Under the pieces are notes generated by a model. That model saw nothing but the letters and a program-made list of their open reading frames with translations. It searched no databases and was not told where the DNA came from. A program made the position numbers and the translations under genes. This document shows positions 8,992-63,519 of a stretch of DNA of 64,000 nt, piece by piece; position 1 is the first letter of the stretch, and every line of letters starts with the position of its first letter. The stretch lies in the sequence record NC_023557.1. One strand, 5' to 3'.

Positions 8992-11367
8992 ATGAATTTA
9001 AATGTGGACTATACAATTTACGTGGATAACACCAAGAAGCTTATCCGCACAATGGTCATTAATTCGGCTCAATCAGCTAATATAATTAACGGCCGTATGG
9101 ATGGCTTGGGGTACGGTCGTGACATCTACGACAAGAGTACCTGGAAGTACTACATGAACATGGCCGGGATCTACCATCCGTCCAATGACCGGATGCAGGT
9201 GAAGTCACTCGATAACGGTCAGCTCATCGACTTTACCCGTGAGAACATGGAGATCCATGTCAGCACCAAACGCAGCTACCAGTACGGCACCGACTATTAT
9301 AAAGCCCTGGTTGCGCAGTACCCGTATCAGATCGCGTTGATCAAGGGGATCTTAAACCCAATTGATCTCAGTGTCTCAACCACCGCCGAGGACTGGCAGA
9401 TCCTCTATTACGATAAGACGCTGGTAGAAGATGGTGAAGAGAACCTGATCCCCCGTTTCCAGGAGTGGGTCAACACCCTGATCACCCAGACCTATCTGCC
9501 GGACTATGTCTACATCACCGAAGATCTGATGCACCACTTCTATCTTTCCTTAATTGGTGGTTTTGGTCCTGGTGTGATCTTGGGGATTCGCTTAGAGAAC
9601 ATCAAAACCAACCGGGCACACAGTTTCCATATCTGGTCGCACATTCTGTCGCATGCTGATATTGAGCAGTATCGCCCGTACCTGAACCGCAAGCAGATCC
9701 TCTATCTGTATCGCAACATTGTGTGGCACACCCGCAACCCGGGTGCACAATACTCCTTCCAGAAGATGATCGACGCCTTCTTAACGGAACGCCGCATCCC
9801 ATTACAGTCGTACAACGCCCAGCACAACACCTCGAGCATTCTGACCAAGATTAAACCCGAGGTGGAGTTCAAGCGTGAACTGCTGAACATGCAAGATGCG
9901 ATTGCCAATGTGAACTATGTGCGCAGTACCCGTGAGATCCTGGAAGATGAAGTGCCGCTGGCGAAGAACAACGCCGACGTGTACGAAGACCGGATCGGGG
10001 AAGTCATTCAGGATGTCGGGACCAACCGCAACAGTAACCTCCCGACCAAAGTGCTGGAATCCAACATGCGGGATCTGTCTGACTCGCTGCCGTTCTCACA
10101 CTCCCTGACATTACTGAACGAATGGGTGCGGTTGTCCTCTACGGGCATGTATACCGCGGTGATCACCACTACCAACCCCAATACCGGGCTGACCATGACC
10201 ATGACGGTAAAGGAAGCGTTTATCCTTTATCTGTACGGTGTCTGGCAAAGTCACGGAGTTAACTTGGAGACGATCCCAACCTTCCGTGCCAACATGGTAA
10301 TGAAGATCCCTCGGCCGCAGTTTGCGTTCTTAAAAGCCCAATACGGCTCGCAGCACGTCACCGACGAGTTCATCAAATACGCCCTGAATCTTTGTCCGGA
10401 TATCCCGGCGATCATCTCGACAGAAACCTTCTATGCGAAGACGCTTGAGATTAATGCCGCGACCCAACTGCACCGGGATCTGTACAGCTACCGTAACCAT
10501 TATCATGCGCGGGCAGAATTCGAAGCCCTGGCCTTTGGTTTCTACCAGGATCAGGATTGCGACATCAACTCCGGCATGACCTATAAGGAGTTCTTCAAAC
10601 AGAAGGGGTGGGACTTCACTGACTTACCGCCGGAAGAGTGGGTGGTGTTCGCCAACAAGGTCTCCTCGATTGCCACCGGGTTGGATACGGCTAACCAGCA
10701 GAAGCTCGCGGATATTCAGCAAGCCATGTTGGGCCTGACCATGCAGCTGTCCAGTTACACCATCCAAGTGATCAGGAAGATCAATGAAGAAGCGGTGGTG
10801 ATGCTTGACTGGCCAACCTTGCGCGGGGGTGACATGCACATGAAGGTCTATCAACAGTGGCACTTGGTGGATAACCCTGTGCGACCGATCGATACCCACA
10901 TGCGTGAGAAGAAGACCTACAACCTGATCCACGACTTCCCGAAAGGCCATAACTCGGTAGAGCGCAGCTGGCGCTTCTATATCGACACCGCACGGCAGTT
11001 AAGTAGTCAGGGAATCAACTCCCGTTACAACTATTTAAACGGCGCACGTATGCGGTTGTGGACGGCTGACGATGCGGCGGGTACCGAGAACGAGTTTGAC
11101 CAGCAGATGACCGTGAAAGATCTGCAAGGTCTCTGGATTGACCCGTACGGCGATGCCCGTCCGCCGGCTGACTTCAGTGCAGAAGTGTTGAACGGATTGT
11201 GGACTGATCCGTTACCCGGGATTGCACCAATCGTTAGTAGCTTGGGTGGGTTGTGGATCGATGGTCCAAAGAGCAGTGGTTTTGATGAGGATCTCAACGG
11301 ACTGCATGCTGAAGTCCCTGCGGCATTACAAGCCTTACGCAATACCCCGGGTGATAGCACCACGTAA
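8992..11367 (+). CDS. Virion structural/baseplate protein (phiKZ gp128-like)
   Basis: About 790 aa divergent from the portal; KYYMNMAGIYH...SLDNG...YP.Q..LIKGILNP motif; GGGAGA RBS before ATG 8992. Confidence 0.65.
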   Translation: MNLNVDYTIYVDNTKKLIRTMVINSAQSANIINGRMDGLGYGRDIYDKSTWKYYMNMAGIYHPSNDRMQVKSLDNGQLIDFTRENMEIHVSTKRSYQYGTDYYKALVAQYPYQIALIKGILNPIDLSVSTTAEDWQILYYDKTLVEDGEENLIPRFQEWVNTLITQTYLPDYVYITEDLMHHFYLSLIGGFGPGVILGIRLENIKTNRAHSFHIWSHILSHADIEQYRPYLNRKQILYLYRNIVWHTRNPGAQYSFQKMIDAFLTERRIPLQSYNAQHNTSSILTKIKPEVEFKRELLNMQDAIANVNYVRSTREILEDEVPLAKNNADVYEDRIGEVIQDVGTNRNSNLPTKVLESNMRDLSDSLPFSHSLTLLNEWVRLSSTGMYTAVITTTNPNTGLTMTMTVKEAFILYLYGVWQSHGVNLETIPTFRANMVMKIPRPQFAFLKAQYGSQHVTDEFIKYALNLCPDIPAIISTETFYAKTLEINAATQLHRDLYSYRNHYHARAEFEALAFGFYQDQDCDINSGMTYKEFFKQKGWDFTDLPPEEWVVFANKVSSIATGLDTANQQKLADIQQAMLGLTMQLSSYTIQVIRKINEEAVVMLDWPTLRGGDMHMKVYQQWHLVDNPVRPIDTHMREKKTYNLIHDFPKGHNSVERSWRFYIDTARQLSSQGINSRYNYLNGARMRLWTADDAAGTENEFDQQMTVKDLQGLWIDPYGDARPPADFSAEVLNGLWTDPLPGIAPIVSSLGGLWIDGPKSSGFDEDLNGLHAEVPAALQALRNTPGDSTT

Positions 11368-55026: not shown

Positions 55027-55732
55027 CCGTATCTTTGCCAATTATGATGGTCACATTGAAGCTATTGATGCGCATTTTAAACCTACCTATCAACTGCAGC
55101 TGGCTGAGCAAGTCATCCCGGCTGAACAGATGGATAAGCTTGTAACCTGGATGGACCACAACGCCCATGTCAAAGGTGCGACGGTCTACCTGATGGAGTT
55201 GGTGCCTGATCTCGATAAACCGCATCCTGCACAATCAGAGATGCGTGTGTTTATTGCACTCGGTATGTTTAATCGTGAAGTCAACCCTGATTTGCCTTAC
55301 TGGTGTCATGTACATCACCATTATCCGGTTAACCTCGCTGTCGACTTGATTGTTACTGACCTGCAAGGCGTTCCTGTAACCCATGCCGTTCTGACTGCGT
55401 TTAAGTCATTTGATCGAGCGCGTACCTACAGGGATAATCTCGGCGGCAAAGGTGGACATCAACCGCATCACGAAATCCATACTGGCATTATTGACCAAAG
55501 TGGTAAGGTGATCTTCGAAGCCTACGGGAATATCAACTGGCATACCAAGAATGCCATTCGCCTGCTGGCTGAACGACAGATCCTACAGGAAGATACCGAG
55601 TTGTCAGCGGTGTGGTTACTGGCGGGTTTAAAAGCAGGTGTCAACTGGAAAGTCGAAGACCACGTTGACATCATGAAGGCAATCGATACTTTCCGTCCGA
55701 GGAATACCCATGATTTTAACGGCTATGTTTAA
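55010..55732 (+). CDS. Hypothetical protein
   Basis: 240 aa, GGAGA RBS. Confidence 0.6.
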   Translation: MQNLNDRIFANYDGHIEAIDAHFKPTYQLQLAEQVIPAEQMDKLVTWMDHNAHVKGATVYLMELVPDLDKPHPAQSEMRVFIALGMFNREVNPDLPYWCHVHHHYPVNLAVDLIVTDLQGVPVTHAVLTAFKSFDRARTYRDNLGGKGGHQPHHEIHTGIIDQSGKVIFEAYGNINWHTKNAIRLLAERQILQEDTELSAVWLLAGLKAGVNWKVEDHVDIMKAIDTFRPRNTHDFNGYV

Positions 55733-56474
55733 GAAGTGCTTTGGTGCGTCGTCTGTCTATAAAGAAGATGACGGCAGTACACGCATTACCGCTGACCAGT
55801 ATGAACTTACGCTGGGTCGATCCTACCATCCTAAGCTCAAGCGTAAGGTGGGTCGGGGATTTGGCTTCTATGTCGAAAATGGCGAGAAGCTCGAGTTCGT
55901 CTTGCGGGGTTACTGGTTTGTGTTGATCGCCTGGAGCAAGAAGCGCAAATCACTCAATTGGGAAGAAGCGGAGAATGCACCGACTTACGGCTTCAATGTT
56001 GTTGACTCTGACTTAGCGATCTATCTCGGCAACGAATCCGCTAAGTCAGACAAACACATCAGCATGCGTAGTCGCAGCAAATACATCCCCCTGCCCTGGG
56101 CCTGGGTCTTCCATAAGCGTGAAGTGTTAACCACCCGTGACACCTGGGCTGATGTCAAAGAAGGTGCGCTGTCTCAAGAGTGGTCGTTCCCCGCCACATA
56201 CATCACCAAGCACAATGAAGTGCAAGAGATGATGATCGAAGCGAAGATGGAGCGCATGACCTGGCGTCTGGCATGGCTCCCTTGGTTCGCTCCGGTTACC
56301 AAGAAAGACCGCTCAGCGAGTTACAAGTACCACGGGAACGGTGGTAACGGGGTTGGTCACGATGCCAGTGGGTGGAAAGGCGGGGTCATCGGTGGCGGTA
56401 TTATCATGCGGGACAATGAACACAACCCGAAAGAAACATTCGACCGTTTAATTAAAGAGCAGCATTACGGCTAA
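55710..56474 (+). CDS. Hypothetical protein
   Basis: 254 aa, Trp-rich. Confidence 0.6.
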   Translation: MILTAMFKKCFGASSVYKEDDGSTRITADQYELTLGRSYHPKLKRKVGRGFGFYVENGEKLEFVLRGYWFVLIAWSKKRKSLNWEEAENAPTYGFNVVDSDLAIYLGNESAKSDKHISMRSRSKYIPLPWAWVFHKREVLTTRDTWADVKEGALSQEWSFPATYITKHNEVQEMMIEAKMERMTWRLAWLPWFAPVTKKDRSASYKYHGNGGNGVGHDASGWKGGVIGGGIIMRDNEHNPKETFDRLIKEQHYG

Positions 56475-56486
56475 GAAGGAAAGCAC

Positions 56487-57638
56487 ATGCGTCAGTATTT
56501 GGATGGGATTCGTTACATCTTTGAGAACGGGTCACAACGAGGGGATCGCACCGGGGTAGGTACGTTGTCGGTGTTCTCGATGAAGCAGACTTACGATCTG
56601 CGTCTGGGATTCCCGCTGGTCACCAGTAAGAAAGTGCGTATCGATTTTATTATCGAAGAGCTCATCTCTTTCCTATCGGGTGACCCTGATATGCCGGGTG
56701 TGGGTATCTGGGATGATTGGCGTGTCAAAGACGAAGTCTCTCGTGAAGTCCCGTTAGAGAACCACGAGCGTTTAAAACTCTGGGTTGAGAAGTCGGACCT
56801 GAAGTATAACGTTGCTTACCTTCAACTCAATGCGATGGGTTCTGTCGAAGCGGGTCATCGTTTCCTGGATGAGCAAGGGATTCCACGTAACAGAAAAGAA
56901 GTACTGGTAGCAGAAGGTGCACTCAATGCACCCTATGGGCCAGCGTGGCGTGCGTGGAAAGGTCGTCTGGGCGAAGTGCATGATCAGATCGGTTATCTGC
57001 TCAAGCTGCTTAAAAACAATCCTACGAGCCGTCGTATGCTATTGTCTGCTTGGGACCCGGCGAACATGCCGGATGAGTCTATCAGTCCGCAGGATAACAT
57101 CATTGATGGCAAGCCATGTCTGACTCCGTGTCATTGGGCGTTTGAGCTGTACACTGACGAAATCCTGGCAGAGGAACGCCTTGATTGGGTCGAAGCTAAT
57201 GCACCTAGCCTCTGGGAAGACTACAATGATCGTTCAGGTCGCGGTCAGTGGTTAGGCGACACAGACAGTAAGCGCCTTCATGAATTCCTGGACGAAGCCG
57301 GCGTACCGAAGTATTACCTGGATCTGAAGTATCACCAGCGTTCCTGTGACTATATGGTTGGCGTGCCGTATAACATCGCCAGCTATGCGGTGTTGCAGCA
57401 CATGTTCGCCGCCACCTGTAACATGATCCCGCGGATACTGGAAGCGGATATGACTAACATCCATATCTACAACTTCCACAAAACCAATGCGGTCATGCAG
57501 GCCAGTCGCAGCCCACGCACACTACCCACTCTGAAGGTACTCGCCGCTCACGATAAGTTGGAAGACTATACGTTGGAAGACTTTGAACTCGAAGGTTATG
57601 ATCCGCATCCTTTTATTAAATATGAAAGAGCGGTCTGA
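56487..57638 (+). CDS. thyA: Thymidylate synthase with two insertions
   Basis: DRTGVGT, FPLVTSKK, YGPAWR, SRR, PCH catalytic Cys, QRSCD...GVPYNIASY, HIY. Confidence 0.95.
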   Translation: MRQYLDGIRYIFENGSQRGDRTGVGTLSVFSMKQTYDLRLGFPLVTSKKVRIDFIIEELISFLSGDPDMPGVGIWDDWRVKDEVSREVPLENHERLKLWVEKSDLKYNVAYLQLNAMGSVEAGHRFLDEQGIPRNRKEVLVAEGALNAPYGPAWRAWKGRLGEVHDQIGYLLKLLKNNPTSRRMLLSAWDPANMPDESISPQDNIIDGKPCLTPCHWAFELYTDEILAEERLDWVEANAPSLWEDYNDRSGRGQWLGDTDSKRLHEFLDEAGVPKYYLDLKYHQRSCDYMVGVPYNIASYAVLQHMFAATCNMIPRILEADMTNIHIYNFHKTNAVMQASRSPRTLPTLKVLAAHDKLEDYTLEDFELEGYDPHPFIKYERAV

Positions 57639-58070: not shown

Positions 58071-58168
58071 ATTAAGTTTTTGACAAAGTTTACTGCAGAT
58101 CTTTTCAGACCTATATCACGTCGGTGAATAACCTTTCACTAATTAACCAATCCGTAGGGAGTTTTATC

Positions 58169-59545
58169 ATGGCTGCATTAAAATCTAAAGTTGAACTGTT
58201 TCACTGGTATCAGGAACTGAAAACTGAATTTAAAACCGGCAAGATTACCGTGTTCGAATTTGAGCGGCAAGTGCTCAGCGAAATTCTTTCCCTGACCGAT
58301 ACTGGTAAAACACCATCTACTGCCAAAATCAGTTTGGTAGTGGACATCCTTAATTCTGTGGTTTTTGATCATGTGTTTACCGCAGACGGTATCATTGACC
58401 TGGACAACATGCTCGCTCGTGAACACGTACGCAACATTTCGGAATTGACGGCAGCACGCAATAACTTTATTACCATACAAGCCCAGGCCCGTCTGAACAA
58501 AGAAAAGGAACAGACTGCGAAACCAGCAGAGCAGAAGGCATTTGCCAAGTTTCCAACGAAAGAAGAGCTCGAATATTGGGTTAATGCCAGAAAGCTATTC
58601 CGTTATGGTAACCCCAATACGCTCGGCACTGAAGCATACCAGGAGGTTGTCAAATACTGGCATCTGGTCGATAAATATCTGGGTACATTAAAACTGGAAC
58701 TGGATCACACCGACCCTAACTACGTCGATAACATCCTGTTGATTGACTACTTTGTATCGTTGGTCGCCAAGCAAGAGGTTCCTGAGGAAGAACGCAGGCA
58801 TCTGAAAGACACACTTAGCAGTCTATATGCGTGCCCCATTAAAACCCCACACATCGATGCATTTGTCGAACGTGGCCAACACCCCCTTCCAGTTAAGCCA
58901 AAACAACCACCCATCGCGCAACAAGCCATCGACCGCGCTATTGCCTGGCGTGAAGAGGAAACCAAAACAAACCATCAGCAAAAAGACATATTACGAGAAT
59001 TCGCCGATCAATACTGTCCGGTAATGGTGGCCAAGCAACATGCCACTCAGCAGTTGTTTGATTTCGTTGCTCGTGCGGTGAAACGTGTCTTGACCGCCAT
59101 TGCTCAGCCAAACAACCCGGAAGACGCCGAGATGCTGGCAAAAGGTCATGCCATCAACATTCTCAATGTTAAGCATGGTGTAATTGGTGTCAGTACCACG
59201 ATTACCAGAAACGGTCTGGTCAAGTTACGCATCTTCGCTGAACGTGAACTATGTAACGAGGACTACGGTATTCCGACTCTGTCGTATAATCAAGTCCGTC
59301 AATCACCTCATGCAACGTTCAGCATACCAGTGCCGGCACTGATAGATGGGTTCATTAACATGTGGGATATCCCTAATCAGGCCCCTCGCCATATGCATAA
59401 TAGCGTAGGCGGTATGTTGGGTAATCCCTATCCGTTACAGCAGCTTGATGGTTTAATGTCAGCTATTGCAAGAGAAGCAGCCGAGTACGGCGTTACGCCT
59501 ACTTATGGTAGTACTGAAGACAGCCTTATCGTTGTTCTCCATTAA
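58169..59545 (+). CDS. Hypothetical protein, paralogue of the next gene's N-terminal domain
   Basis: WYQELKTEFKTGKI and LIDYFVSLV...RHL motifs; AGGGAG RBS. Confidence 0.65.
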   Translation: MAALKSKVELFHWYQELKTEFKTGKITVFEFERQVLSEILSLTDTGKTPSTAKISLVVDILNSVVFDHVFTADGIIDLDNMLAREHVRNISELTAARNNFITIQAQARLNKEKEQTAKPAEQKAFAKFPTKEELEYWVNARKLFRYGNPNTLGTEAYQEVVKYWHLVDKYLGTLKLELDHTDPNYVDNILLIDYFVSLVAKQEVPEEERRHLKDTLSSLYACPIKTPHIDAFVERGQHPLPVKPKQPPIAQQAIDRAIAWREEETKTNHQQKDILREFADQYCPVMVAKQHATQQLFDFVARAVKRVLTAIAQPNNPEDAEMLAKGHAINILNVKHGVIGVSTTITRNGLVKLRIFAERELCNEDYGIPTLSYNQVRQSPHATFSIPVPALIDGFINMWDIPNQAPRHMHNSVGGMLGNPYPLQQLDGLMSAIAREAAEYGVTPTYGSTEDSLIVVLH

Positions 59546-59553
59546 TCCACACG

Positions 59554-59580
59554 GGGAGGTTCGCCTCCCTTTTATTTTTT
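59554..59580 (+). terminator. Canonical intrinsic terminator GGGAGG-TTCG-CCTCCC followed by a T-rich tail
   Basis: GC stem plus long U-tract, no TATGCC. Confidence 0.75.
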
Positions 59581-59606
59581 AATTAACCTACTGTGAGAAT
59601 TTAACC

Positions 59607-60308
59607 ATGAACAAAGAAACTTATACTACCTGGTACAATGGATTAAAAGAAAGATTGGCGGCAGGTGACATTGATCAAGTTACTTATGAATCGCTTATCA
59701 TCAGTAATCTTCATTCGTTGCTGACTCGACACAGGCATACCCGGCACGATATTAACCATCTGCCGTTACCAAAACATTTCGAACTGATTAACCATTATTT
59801 CGAACTGATTGCTGATGCAGAAATGTCAGAAAGAAATGCCAGACATTTAGTCTCTTTTGTGGCCAGTATTATCGAGGCGATCCCGGCAGCCAGGGCATTC
59901 GGAAAGAAACATAACACACCACTACCCCCTTCTAAGGAAGAGCTCGAGGGTAAACTTGCTTGGGGGCGTAAGAAAGTCGCTACCCCAACTGAAGCGATGC
60001 GTGGTCGTCCGGTGATCACCCAGGTCAACGAACCTGAGAACGAAGTAACCATTGAACTACCCTGGAAAACCGCATTGCACGTTTACAAAGGGTTCCTGGT
60101 AAAGGCACTGATGTCAAAGCACGGATACCAATACAGTGATGCGTATAGCTACATTACTGATCATCAGAACAAATACGACGAACTCTTGGCAGAAGTCCTC
60201 AACAGCATTATTGCTAATAAAGAGTCGCATCTGGTGTCGGTAGGTGGCGGCATCACTGCAGCGGGTACTGGTCTGGTGGTAAGCGGGATTATTAAGCCGG
60301 AGGAGTGA
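59607..60308 (+). CDS. Protein with a C-terminal segment resembling the RNAP beta-prime dock region
   Basis: GRPVIT...LPWKTALHVYKGFLVKALMSKHG...DELLAEVLNSII. Confidence 0.6.
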   Translation: MNKETYTTWYNGLKERLAAGDIDQVTYESLIISNLHSLLTRHRHTRHDINHLPLPKHFELINHYFELIADAEMSERNARHLVSFVASIIEAIPAARAFGKKHNTPLPPSKEELEGKLAWGRKKVATPTEAMRGRPVITQVNEPENEVTIELPWKTALHVYKGFLVKALMSKHGYQYSDAYSYITDHQNKYDELLAEVLNSIIANKESHLVSVGGGITAAGTGLVVSGIIKPEE

Positions 60309-60868
60309 TGAAAGGAGAGATAGAGACACGCTTCAGAAGACACTACGGCAACCACATTAAACGGGGTAGTGATATCGCAGTGCCTTTATACCACATTAGT
60401 CTACAGAATGACTTGGAGGGGCTATGGCGACCTAAAGCCCCTGACTCGCCATTTGATATTCCGAAGAAACCCAGCATCATTACTGAAATGCCGCTCCCGC
60501 GTATCTGTGTAGCGCCATCTATCGAACAGTGCTTCTGGGCAATCTATCCCAATATCTCTAAGCTCTTTGAAGAGGAAGAATACGCAGCGGTTTGTTTTGC
60601 GGTTTATCAACCGATTCTGCATGCCGGTATTGCTGTTGTGGATGCCAGTACGTTAACGCAATGCCGACTGGTGCACGATGCACATATTACCGGCGAGCAT
60701 TGGTTACTCAGCGATACCACCATGTGTGTGATCGACTTTATTCAAGTTAAGAACACCTCACACGGTGAGTTCGTAAAGTTCCATCCGTTTGATACTCCGG
60801 TTGGTAACGAGTGGGAACTTGCCCCTAAAAATGTTGTTTATCATTCACTTAAATTAACGGAGTTGTAA
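60305..60868 (+). CDS. Possible ADP-ribosyltransferase-fold protein
   Basis: LYHIS ... PRICVAPS ... DAHITGEHWL: H, S and E strands in ART order. Confidence 0.35.
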   Translation: MMKGEIETRFRRHYGNHIKRGSDIAVPLYHISLQNDLEGLWRPKAPDSPFDIPKKPSIITEMPLPRICVAPSIEQCFWAIYPNISKLFEEEEYAAVCFAVYQPILHAGIAVVDASTLTQCRLVHDAHITGEHWLLSDTTMCVIDFIQVKNTSHGEFVKFHPFDTPVGNEWELAPKNVVYHSLKLTEL

Positions 60869-62449: not shown

Positions 62450-62980
62450 ATGGATGTTTTATTTAATCTCTCCTCATGGCAATCGCTTTTACTTGTGGTA
62501 GTCGTACTCCTACTGTGGTTGTATTACCAACGACTTCAACACCTGCGTCGTAAGTATCATCGTCGTAATGAACGCATGATGGCGCAGAGCGTGGTCATGA
62601 CATCCCGGCTGTTACTGAGTACCTTCTCGGAGATTGTGGAACGTGCTAAGGAAGAGGACATCTACCAGCGTGATCCTAACTCCCCGATTGCGGCAGACCG
62701 GGCCAGTGCGATGGCCTGCTCCTCCATCTTCAGTGGGTTGTATAACCTGGTTGTGGTGCCCGTCACCACCCTTGATCCGGTGTTCAACGATTTATTGATT
62801 ACCGGTACTGAGCGGGAAGATGTTGAGGAAGGGGTCTTTGTGTCGTTTTATTTGGGTGAACAGCGTAATGATGTGGTTAGGCATTTTATACCCGACCGGT
62901 CGTTACAGGCCTTTATCACCCAAACGCGTGCCTTCAGTGCTTACCTGCGACAGGCTGCGAATACAAAACCACCACAATGA
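62450..62980 (+). CDS. Single-pass membrane protein
   Basis: N-terminal TM followed by a basic stretch. Confidence 0.6.
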   Translation: MDVLFNLSSWQSLLLVVVVLLLWLYYQRLQHLRRKYHRRNERMMAQSVVMTSRLLLSTFSEIVERAKEEDIYQRDPNSPIAADRASAMACSSIFSGLYNLVVVPVTTLDPVFNDLLITGTEREDVEEGVFVSFYLGEQRNDVVRHFIPDRSLQAFITQTRAFSAYLRQAANTKPPQ

Positions 62981-62988
62981 GGTGACAC

Positions 62989-63519
62989 ATGACCAATTAT
63001 GGTTTTCTGCTGAACACAGTACTTCTGGCTTTTCTTATTTGGTTTGGTTACCGACTGCACACGTTGGTAAACAACAGCGAGAAAGCCACCCTCGCCGCTG
63101 ATCATAACGCCAAGCTGCGCTTCCTGACCTATGCAGCCCGGCAGATAATGAGTGACTTGTATACGTCGCTCAATCTTCCGACGCTCACCGGGTGTGCGAA
63201 GATGTATCTACGTGATGACGGCAAGCTTGATAATATTGAAGTCATTATGCGACTCTTCATGAAAACCCATAATGAGATTATTACCAAGCTCTCCGAGGGA
63301 TTGGTGTCGGATCATTTGAAGATCACCGATGTTAAAGTTACCCATGATCTGGTGACCAACGAAGTGCTCATCACACTCTTGTATCCGAATAAAGTCACTG
63401 ACATCCTGGTCTTCCATCATAACCACCTGGCGCAGGCGATCTACCAGCTGGATCGATTGCAGCATCGGCTCTCAACGTTCCACAAAGCGGTGCCGAACCG
63501 CGACCTGTACCAACTCTAA
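62989..63519 (+). CDS. Single-pass membrane protein
   Basis: N-terminal TM, GAGGTG RBS. Confidence 0.6.
   Translation: MTNYGFLLNTVLLAFLIWFGYRLHTLVNNSEKATLAADHNAKLRFLTYAARQIMSDLYTSLNLPTLTGCAKMYLRDDGKLDNIEVIMRLFMKTHNEIITKLSEGLVSDHLKITDVKVTHDLVTNEVLITLLYPNKVTDILVFHHNHLAQAIYQLDRLQHRLSTFHKAVPNRDLYQL

Follow-up and report, generated by a model that had tools for sequence, protein, structure and literature searches.

The region considered here lies in the first 64 kb of the genome of Erwinia phage Ea35-70 (NC_023557.1; 271,084 bp; genus Agricanvirus); this 64-kb stretch is the window referred to below, and positions are given in it unless otherwise stated. Ea35-70 is a phiKZ-like, nucleus-forming jumbo phage whose genome encodes chimallin, PhuZ, and two multisubunit RNA polymerases. 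Toward the end of the window is a small open reading frame (ORF), Ea357_070 (gp070), annotated as “hypothetical protein.” A first-pass annotation had proposed that it contains a segment resembling the beta-prime subunit of RNA polymerase, running from residue 133 (nt 60003) to residue 202 (ending at nt 60212). The comparisons below bear this out and very strongly favor a more specific identity: gp070 would be an accessory, non-catalytic pseudo-subunit, derived from an internal fragment of a chimallivirus gene for beta'N, the N-terminal beta-prime piece of the non-virion RNA polymerase (nvRNAP), which in phiKZ is gp55. The gene and its segments are:

59607–60308, + strand: Ea357_070 (gp070), 233 aa; apparently a truncated, catalytically dead nvRNAP beta'N paralogue
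59607–59741, + strand: residues 1–45, N-terminal helical hairpin module, common to the upstream gene product gp069 and to gp76 of phage AH06; not detectably beta-prime
59766–59936, + strand: residues 54–110, helical, weakly collinear with the post-lid (clamp-helix) region of beta'N
59937–60227, + strand: residues 111–207, robust beta'N core with K-G-x-x-R-K connector, R-x-V-I-T strand, L-P-W strand and helix, and dock insertion
60228–60305, + strand: residues 208–233, invariant Gly-rich hydrophobic tail in place of the RNPTL strands (low-confidence alignment)

Relationship to phage beta'N

The motifs originally quoted (GRPVIT ... ELPWKTALHVYKGFLVKALMSKHG ... AYSYI ... DELLAEVLNSII) are present in gp070. 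The protein matches its own PHROG, 11276, which PHROGs lists as of unknown function, and it is also matched by PHROG 2987, “RNA polymerase beta subunit” (E 2.5e-16, residues 60–205 against 232–368 of a 478-position profile). A phmmer search of PDB with the single gp070 sequence finds phiKZ gp55 (7OGP_A) at E 1.3e-4, residues 132–204 aligning without gaps to 313–385. The gp070 family was represented by an alignment of 11 database clusters (233–270 aa, 53–96% identical; 12 members in the conservation counts), and the resulting profile matches phiKZ gp55 in PDB at E 6.8e-10 and AR9 beta'N at E 6e-5 (residues 54–209 against 172–321). An alignment of 24 diverse beta'N proteins, built around the beta'N of Ea35-70 itself (Ea357_220), was used for profile-profile comparison: hhalign joins the two families with a probability of 98.7% (E 2.7e-16), gp070 residues 111–207 pairing with Ea357_220 residues 292–387. 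The resemblance to E. coli RpoC that had been proposed points in the right direction but is statistically marginal, the family profile reaching only E 0.15 with cyanobacterial gamma and E 0.51 with a bacterial beta-prime (at its residues 339–429); it is the match to phage beta'N that is solid.

An HMMER scan of 1.84 billion representative sequences gave 220 matches at E <=0.001. Besides the gp070 family and one odd fragment, the best 150 of these look like beta'N and align at the same place. Judged from such searches, the gp070 family is confined to Agricanvirus-like phages and absent from all other chimalliviruses. The core of gp070 is up to 32% identical to the beta'N of other lineages.

The pattern expected of homologues, GR.VIT/LP.K.AL, is largely conserved: P135, V136, I137, L151, P152, W153, A156, and L157 are the same in all 12 family members, and at least 90% of these share G133, T138, and K154. 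R134 is variable (nine R, two C, one Q), where the equivalent arginine (R315) is invariant in real beta'N, and the column of another beta'N-invariant residue, K297 in Ea357_220 numbering, holds K, R, N, A, or T. Invariant fold residues (V, I, P, W, L) together with relaxed basic residues fit a protein that has lost an active-center role and retained the fold.

The catalytic parts are missing, as had been claimed. None of the 12 family members has RNPTL or D[FY]DGD, and gp070 ends some 25–50 residues ahead of the expected NADFDGD magnesium loop; the place of RNPTL is taken by GGGITAAG, in a part of the alignment that is of low confidence. The zinc cysteines of beta'N (C72, C87, C90) are invariant, and gp070, at 233 aa against about 480–500 aa for the full-length protein, has no such region. 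Pfam finds nothing above noise in gp070 and nothing informative in its neighbors, but even in the true subunit it covers only residues 391–450. By its sequence gp070 thus lacks the defining catalytic features of beta-prime: it is beta-prime-derived, but not a functional member of that family.

One family member from a metagenomic phage (P0008, at 6001–6813 of contig L011) has a 37-residue C-terminal extension with a “DFDG” four residues past the usual end, which puts it about 20 residues off the register of the catalytic loop. Its probability by chance is about 3e-4, a post hoc estimate, and it could be either a relic or a chance occurrence.

Segments of the protein

The first-pass annotation had identified the beta-prime-like segment as the dock. 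A dock insertion is indeed present, but the homologous region is wider, beginning at about residue 111 and including the K-G-x-x-R-K connector and, from the double-psi beta-barrel, the first two strands and the helix. The suggestion that the segment is fused to an unrelated phage domain likewise stands for residues 1–45, the module shared with gp069 (hhalign of gp069 7–45 against gp070 3–41: probability 82%, E 1.1e-5), but less clearly for residues 54–112, which are weakly collinear with the clamp-helix region of AR9 beta'N: the lid of AR9 beta'N is at 161–177, and gp070 aligns directly after it, where the clamp helices lie. A hidden Markov model of the N-terminal module matches only gp069 and gp070 in the Ea35-70 genome, and residues 1–85 of AH06_76 match phrog_11276.

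In an AlphaFold2 model, the predicted local distance difference test score (pLDDT) is about 90 for residues 1–45, below 50 in the barrel strands (residues 115–149) and invariant tail (residues 205–233), and below 30 in the Gly-rich tail. The low scores suggest that these strands and the tail may fold on a partner. As for what the tail might be, its assignment to barrel strands beta3–beta4 depends on a low-confidence alignment. A membrane anchor seems unlikely, the best 19-residue Kyte-Doolittle mean being 1.48 (usual threshold 1.6) and the biological-scale sum +4.1 kcal/mol, both crude measures.

A complete polymerase set elsewhere in the genome

Ea357_220 is the phage's complete catalytic beta'N. 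It is 495 aa long, has NADFDGD and a PF00623 match, matches PHROG 2987 over its full length (E 2.8e-197), and adjoins chimallin as phiKZ gp55 does; in the alignment built around it the zinc cysteines, RNPTL, and NADFDGD are invariant. Further nvRNAP genes in Ea35-70 are Ea357_002, 245, and 246, with a gp68 homologue, Ea357_241 (E 1.9e-21 to PHIKZ068), and the virion RNA polymerase (vRNAP) genes 162, 163, and 266 are intact. The gp070 profile finds only Ea357_220 in its own genome (E 4.8e-5), apart from a weak match to gp069 at the N-terminus, and the gp070 locus is 123 kb from Ea357_220. All this indicates that gp070 is an extra copy alongside a complete phage polymerase. In phage RAY, orthologues of the four beta and beta-prime nvRNAP subunits localize to the phage nucleus (bioRxiv 10.1101/2023.02.24.529968).

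Ea357_002 (1041–2729) is annotated merely as “polymerase”; its RAY orthologue, gp002, is reported to be nvRNAP beta subunit 1 and to be located in the phage nucleus (bioRxiv 10.1101/2023.02.24.529968).

Gene neighborhood and sequence evolution

The features surrounding and overlapping gp070 are:

58169–59545, + strand: Ea357_069 (gp069), 458 aa, with the same N-terminal module as gp070
59550–60005, + strand: recombinational cassette, 58–80% identical to RAY between flanks of 97–100%, comprising the 5' leader and gp070 codons 1–133
59553–59580, + strand: terminator-like GC hairpin and T-run between gp069 and gp070 (7-bp stem with 5 GC pairs, T-rich tail)
59580–59588, + strand: 9-mer TAATTAACC, 27 nt upstream of the gp070 ATG
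60299–60310, + strand: GGAGGAG Shine-Dalgarno sequence in the final gp070 codons and TGATG stop/start overlap with gp071
60308–60868, + strand: Ea357_071 (gp071), 186 aa, predicted to be the translationally coupled partner of gp070; structural relative of gp168 (phrog_5043)

All 12 members of the gp070 family are intact ORFs of 233–270 aa. Ratios of nonsynonymous to synonymous substitution (dN/dS) against AH06 and a 288-kb metagenomic relative are 0.07–0.14 in the core, 0.01–0.03 in the tail, and, where they can be estimated, 0.1–0.3 in the N-terminus. Synonymous sites are saturated in these comparisons; the low dN/dS despite this saturation indicates that gp070 is a working protein and not a relic. 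A pseudogene or decaying duplicate was accordingly rejected, the frames being intact in all members and dN/dS 0.01–0.3 by region.

Comparison with RAY shows a different kind of change. Within the cassette the proportion of synonymous sites that differ (pS) is 0.53–0.78, and in the tail it is 0. A patch of 58–80% identity within flanks of 97–100% indicates that recombination has exchanged the N-terminal half of gp070 for that of a divergent allele, with a crossover at the start of the conserved core. In one comparable phage pair gp070 is 62% identical and beta'N 89%.

The abutting arrangement of gp070 and gp071 is also found in AH06, RAY, Simmy50, and the metagenomic phage of contig L011. Fusion of the two by read-through or frameshifting was considered and rejected: gp070 closes with two in-frame stops (TGA TGA), and there is no slippery site.

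Ancestry

A tree from 97 alignment columns places the gp070 family, which is monophyletic (support 100) and has a long stem, inside the phage beta'N radiation but not beside the clade of its own beta'N; sisterhood with that clade is not rejected by an approximately unbiased (AU) test (p 0.37). The question of host or phage origin, left to phylogeny by the first-pass annotation, is clearly answered by these sequences in favor of phage nvRNAP. Either an ancient duplication within the lineage or capture from another chimallivirus would fit both the tree and the AU test.

The position at which the homology ends may indicate how gp070 arose. Many metagenomic beta'N ORFs (P0070–P0214) stop exactly within RN/PTL or NAD/FDGD, the slash marking the break. 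In one contig (L015 3001–5679) the beta'N ORF ends in QRN and is followed by an ORF for an HNH endonuclease and a group I intron core (RF00028, E 6.7e-6, under the gathering score), and phiKZ gp55 is itself a spliced product (gp55 + gp56.1). The homology in gp070 ends at residue 207, equivalent to Ea357_220 residue 387, nine residues before the RN/PTL site. This proximity, about 10 residues, to a recurrent group I intron site is the reason for inferring an exon-1-like origin: gp070 likely began as an exon-1-like piece of an intron-interrupted beta'N gene. No intron relic was found near gp070 by Rfam.

Decayed pieces of the gp070 block are also present at 9290–15076 of contig L010 (GCA_054859325.1, JBTAPL010000082.1, 4.7 Mb), which looks eukaryotic, with spliced gene models, retroelements, and 41% GC. 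First comes the tail of gp070 (72.5% identity), then gp072, broken by frameshifts into four pieces, followed by a reverse transcriptase/integrase element and the N-terminus of gp073. They could be old phage DNA in a big genome, or the assembly could be chimeric.

Possible functions

How might a dead piece of a polymerase subunit be used? Chimallivirus polymerases have no alpha and omega assembly platform, and import of nvRNAP depends on contacts between subunits. One model, which we favor only tentatively, is that gp070 acts as a binding pseudo-subunit: it would work by protein-protein binding, occupying, on some partner in the polymerase, the surface to which beta'N normally binds. The beta-like Ea357_245 and 002, beta'C (246), and the sigma-like gp68 homologue (241) are candidates for this partner. 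In its sequence gp070 keeps fold-determining residues of the connector, of the double-psi beta-barrel (first half), and of the dock, and possibly the clamp helices as well; the zinc-binding N-terminus, RNPTL, and NADFDGD have been lost, and the N-terminal hairpin module and the hyper-conserved Gly-rich tail have been gained. Clamp and barrel regions that are kept, and strands and a tail that are disordered alone yet invariant, are best read as belonging to a pseudo-subunit that folds onto a partner. In phiKZ the N-terminal domain of gp68 sits on two gp55 clamp helices, and gp68 contacts both gp55 and a beta-like subunit (PMC8287921, PMC7618050). So bound, gp070 might gate or modulate assembly, import, or activity of nvRNAP; alternatively, it might tether its variable N-terminal domain and the coupled gp071 to the transcription machinery. 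A sharper version, in which the dead beta'N fragment competes with the real subunit for a beta-like or sigma-like partner, and so either gates nvRNAP assembly or import or poisons the polymerase of a co-infecting related jumbo phage, appears rather unlikely.

Several observations weigh against a pseudo-subunit bound to the polymerase. With only 23% identity to its own phage's beta'N, the core of gp070 may no longer fit the same partners. Foldseek with the gp070 model does rank phiKZ nvRNAP first, in line with the structural check originally proposed, but only at E 0.1, with a model that is poor between domains (whole-model predicted template-modeling score 0.47). Retention of the clamp helices in residues 54–110 is suggestive only, resting on one extended alignment; hhalign of residues 1–110 alone against beta'N is not significant, so that only residues 111–207 are demonstrably beta'N-derived. 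gp070 is neither in the RAY/Deimos-Minion lysate proteome list nor in the RAY green fluorescent protein screen. Finally, the sequence relationships of gp071, which place it in a virion-protein-like family, point away from transcription: it resembles uncharacterized jumbo-phage proteins, including a 233-aa Ea35-70 protein taken as head-cluster gp168 (PHROG 5043; record positions 137036–137737), and its relatives in other jumbo phages sit among virion genes, without a gp070-like neighbor, one of them (phiR1-37 g082) being annotated “structural protein.” The gp071 model is confident (pLDDT 87.6) and has no significant match in PDB, the best (E 0.12–1) being to proteins of ADP-ribosyltransferase fold and too weak to call. 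gp071 was also considered as the missing catalytic C-terminal part of beta'N and rejected, hhalign being not significant; the same comparison with beta'N gave nothing significant for the gp068, gp069, gp071, or gp072 families.

These properties of gp071 lead to a different model, that gp070 is a re-used scaffold unrelated to transcription and operates in complex with gp071; it might, for example, serve in assembling the virion or be packaged or ejected, and its beta'N ancestry would be of historical interest only. The conserved TGATG overlap and internal Shine-Dalgarno sequence couple the two genes, the gp071 relatives among virion genes include the phiR1-37 protein and the head-cluster protein gp168, and the most conserved part of gp070 is its non-beta-prime tail. 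This nevertheless seems improbable: the gp071 family is found without gp070 in other jumbo phages, neither protein is marked as belonging to the virion in the Ea35-70 record or appears in the RAY lysate proteome list, and the beta'N core itself is clearly under purifying selection. A decoy directed outward, with the beta'N-like surface or the variable N-terminal domain trapping a host factor, a defense sensor, or a polymerase subunit of a co-infecting chimallivirus, is in keeping with other features of the locus. Divergent alleles of codons 1–133 are exchanged between phages with 97–100% identical flanks, and the N-terminal module has multiplied locally (gp069, gp070, AH06_76), both typical of conflict genes; gp070 is in an accessory region near the CBASS (cyclic oligonucleotide-based antiphage signaling system) inhibitor Acb3; and its core is nearer to the beta'N of other lineages than to its own. 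We nevertheless consider this unlikely: no known defense or host factor is tied to a beta'N-like surface, PADLOC has no matches for gp068–gp073, and the saturated synonymous change in the patch points to recombination and does not demonstrate positive selection. That gp070 mimics the host enzyme is implausible, the phage core being far from host beta-prime (E 0.15–0.5).

Two simpler explanations fare worse. A functionless relic of an exon-1 duplication that simply persists would account for a boundary that coincides with an intron hot spot and for a family restricted to one clade on a long stem branch; it is nevertheless very unlikely, since none of the 12 clusters, down to 53% identity, has a broken frame, dN/dS is well under 1 everywhere, and the 26-residue tail is invariant despite saturated synonymous sites. 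It also seems highly improbable that either of the two split polymerases genuinely requires gp070 as one of its pieces, even though the beta and beta-prime of jumbo phages are split over several polypeptides and the AH06 annotation says beta-prime. Ea357_220 holds the same region and the catalytic loop in one chain, which makes the exchangeable module of a split polymerase envisaged in the first-pass annotation unlikely as well; the vRNAP large subunit, Ea357_163, is intact and not matched by the gp070 profile; and gp070 is absent from other chimalliviruses and from the core genome.

Other features of the region

The 9-mer upstream of gp070, TAATTAACC, is repeated identically at 58140, 29 nt upstream of the gp069 ATG. 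It is enriched in the genome, with 31 occurrences when <=1 mismatch is allowed (10.8 expected); of its eight exact copies, six are 0–30 nt upstream of a start codon (58140, 59580, and 38350 in the window; record positions 104543, 263046, and 267127). It may be a promoter or leader element.

The Acb3 gene mentioned above is Ea357_066 (55710–56474, + strand), annotated as hypothetical but clearly recognizable (Pfam PF25187, E 3.4e-62); its neighbor, Ea357_064, is an Rv2179c-like 3'-5' exoribonuclease. An HNH homing endonuclease gene interrupts the thymidylate synthase gene of AH06, leaving it as two ORFs (L007 775–2769); the Ea35-70 orthologue (56487–57638) is uninterrupted. Downstream, Ea357_074 and Ea357_075 (62450–62980 and 62989–63519) lie side by side; both are 176-aa ORFs whose products have a hydrophobic segment at the N-terminus, and they may encode a pair of small membrane proteins, possibly paralogues of each other.

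Comparison with known systems

The closest described relative of gp070 is phiKZ gp55 (nvRNAP beta'N; PHROG 2987; 7OGP and 8QUE chain A), with which it shares about 97 homologous residues, the K-G-x-x-R-K, R-x-V-I-T, and h-P-W elements and following helices being collinear. The differences are large: gp070 is half the length, lacks the Cys4 zinc site, RNPTL, and NADFDGD, has relaxed basic residues, and is an extra copy; its N-terminal module is unrelated, and its invariant tail is novel. AR9 beta'N (gp270; 7S00/7S01 chain d) is similar over gp070 residues 54–209 (E 6e-5), suggesting that the post-lid clamp helices are retained, but is catalytic (DYDGD at 370–374), and the N-terminal part of that alignment is weak. 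Like gp070, the exon-1 products of beta'N genes interrupted by introns are truncated just before or within the catalytic motifs, but they represent the 5' portion of a gene that is functional when spliced, and their N-terminus is complete, whereas gp070 is at a separate locus and N-terminally truncated. Cyanobacterial and plastid gamma (RpoC1) is also an N-terminal piece of beta-prime made as a separate polypeptide, with a marginal match (E 0.15), but it retains the catalytic loop and is an obligatory subunit. The first-pass annotation knew of no described stand-alone example, and the reviews and Agricanvirus papers searched likewise contain no truncated beta'N paralogue; the AH06 GenBank record alone labels the gp070 orthologue “beta-prime.”

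In its proposed mode of action gp070 would resemble T7 Gp2, T4 AsiA, Xp10 p7, and P23-45 gp39 and gp76, all small phage proteins that bind RNA polymerase and so regulate it; gp070 too would be a small, non-enzymatic protein on a polymerase surface. None of these regulators is known to be derived from a polymerase subunit. If the pseudo-subunit model is correct, gp070 would represent a new class of transcription regulator, one derived from a subunit; if it competes with the real subunit, it would be the first regulator or weapon made from a piece of polymerase, possibly one born as an intron-delimited exon. Should gp070 turn out to be unrelated to transcription, it would still be a clear instance of a domain put to new use, to which an unusually conserved tail has been added. 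As a conserved, dead copy of the beta-prime region in which the surfaces for partner binding lie, gp070 would be a natural handle on how the split subunits of chimallivirus polymerases are assembled, brought into the nucleus, and regulated. It also exemplifies how intron-delimited exons of essential genes may seed the accessory genes of jumbo phages.

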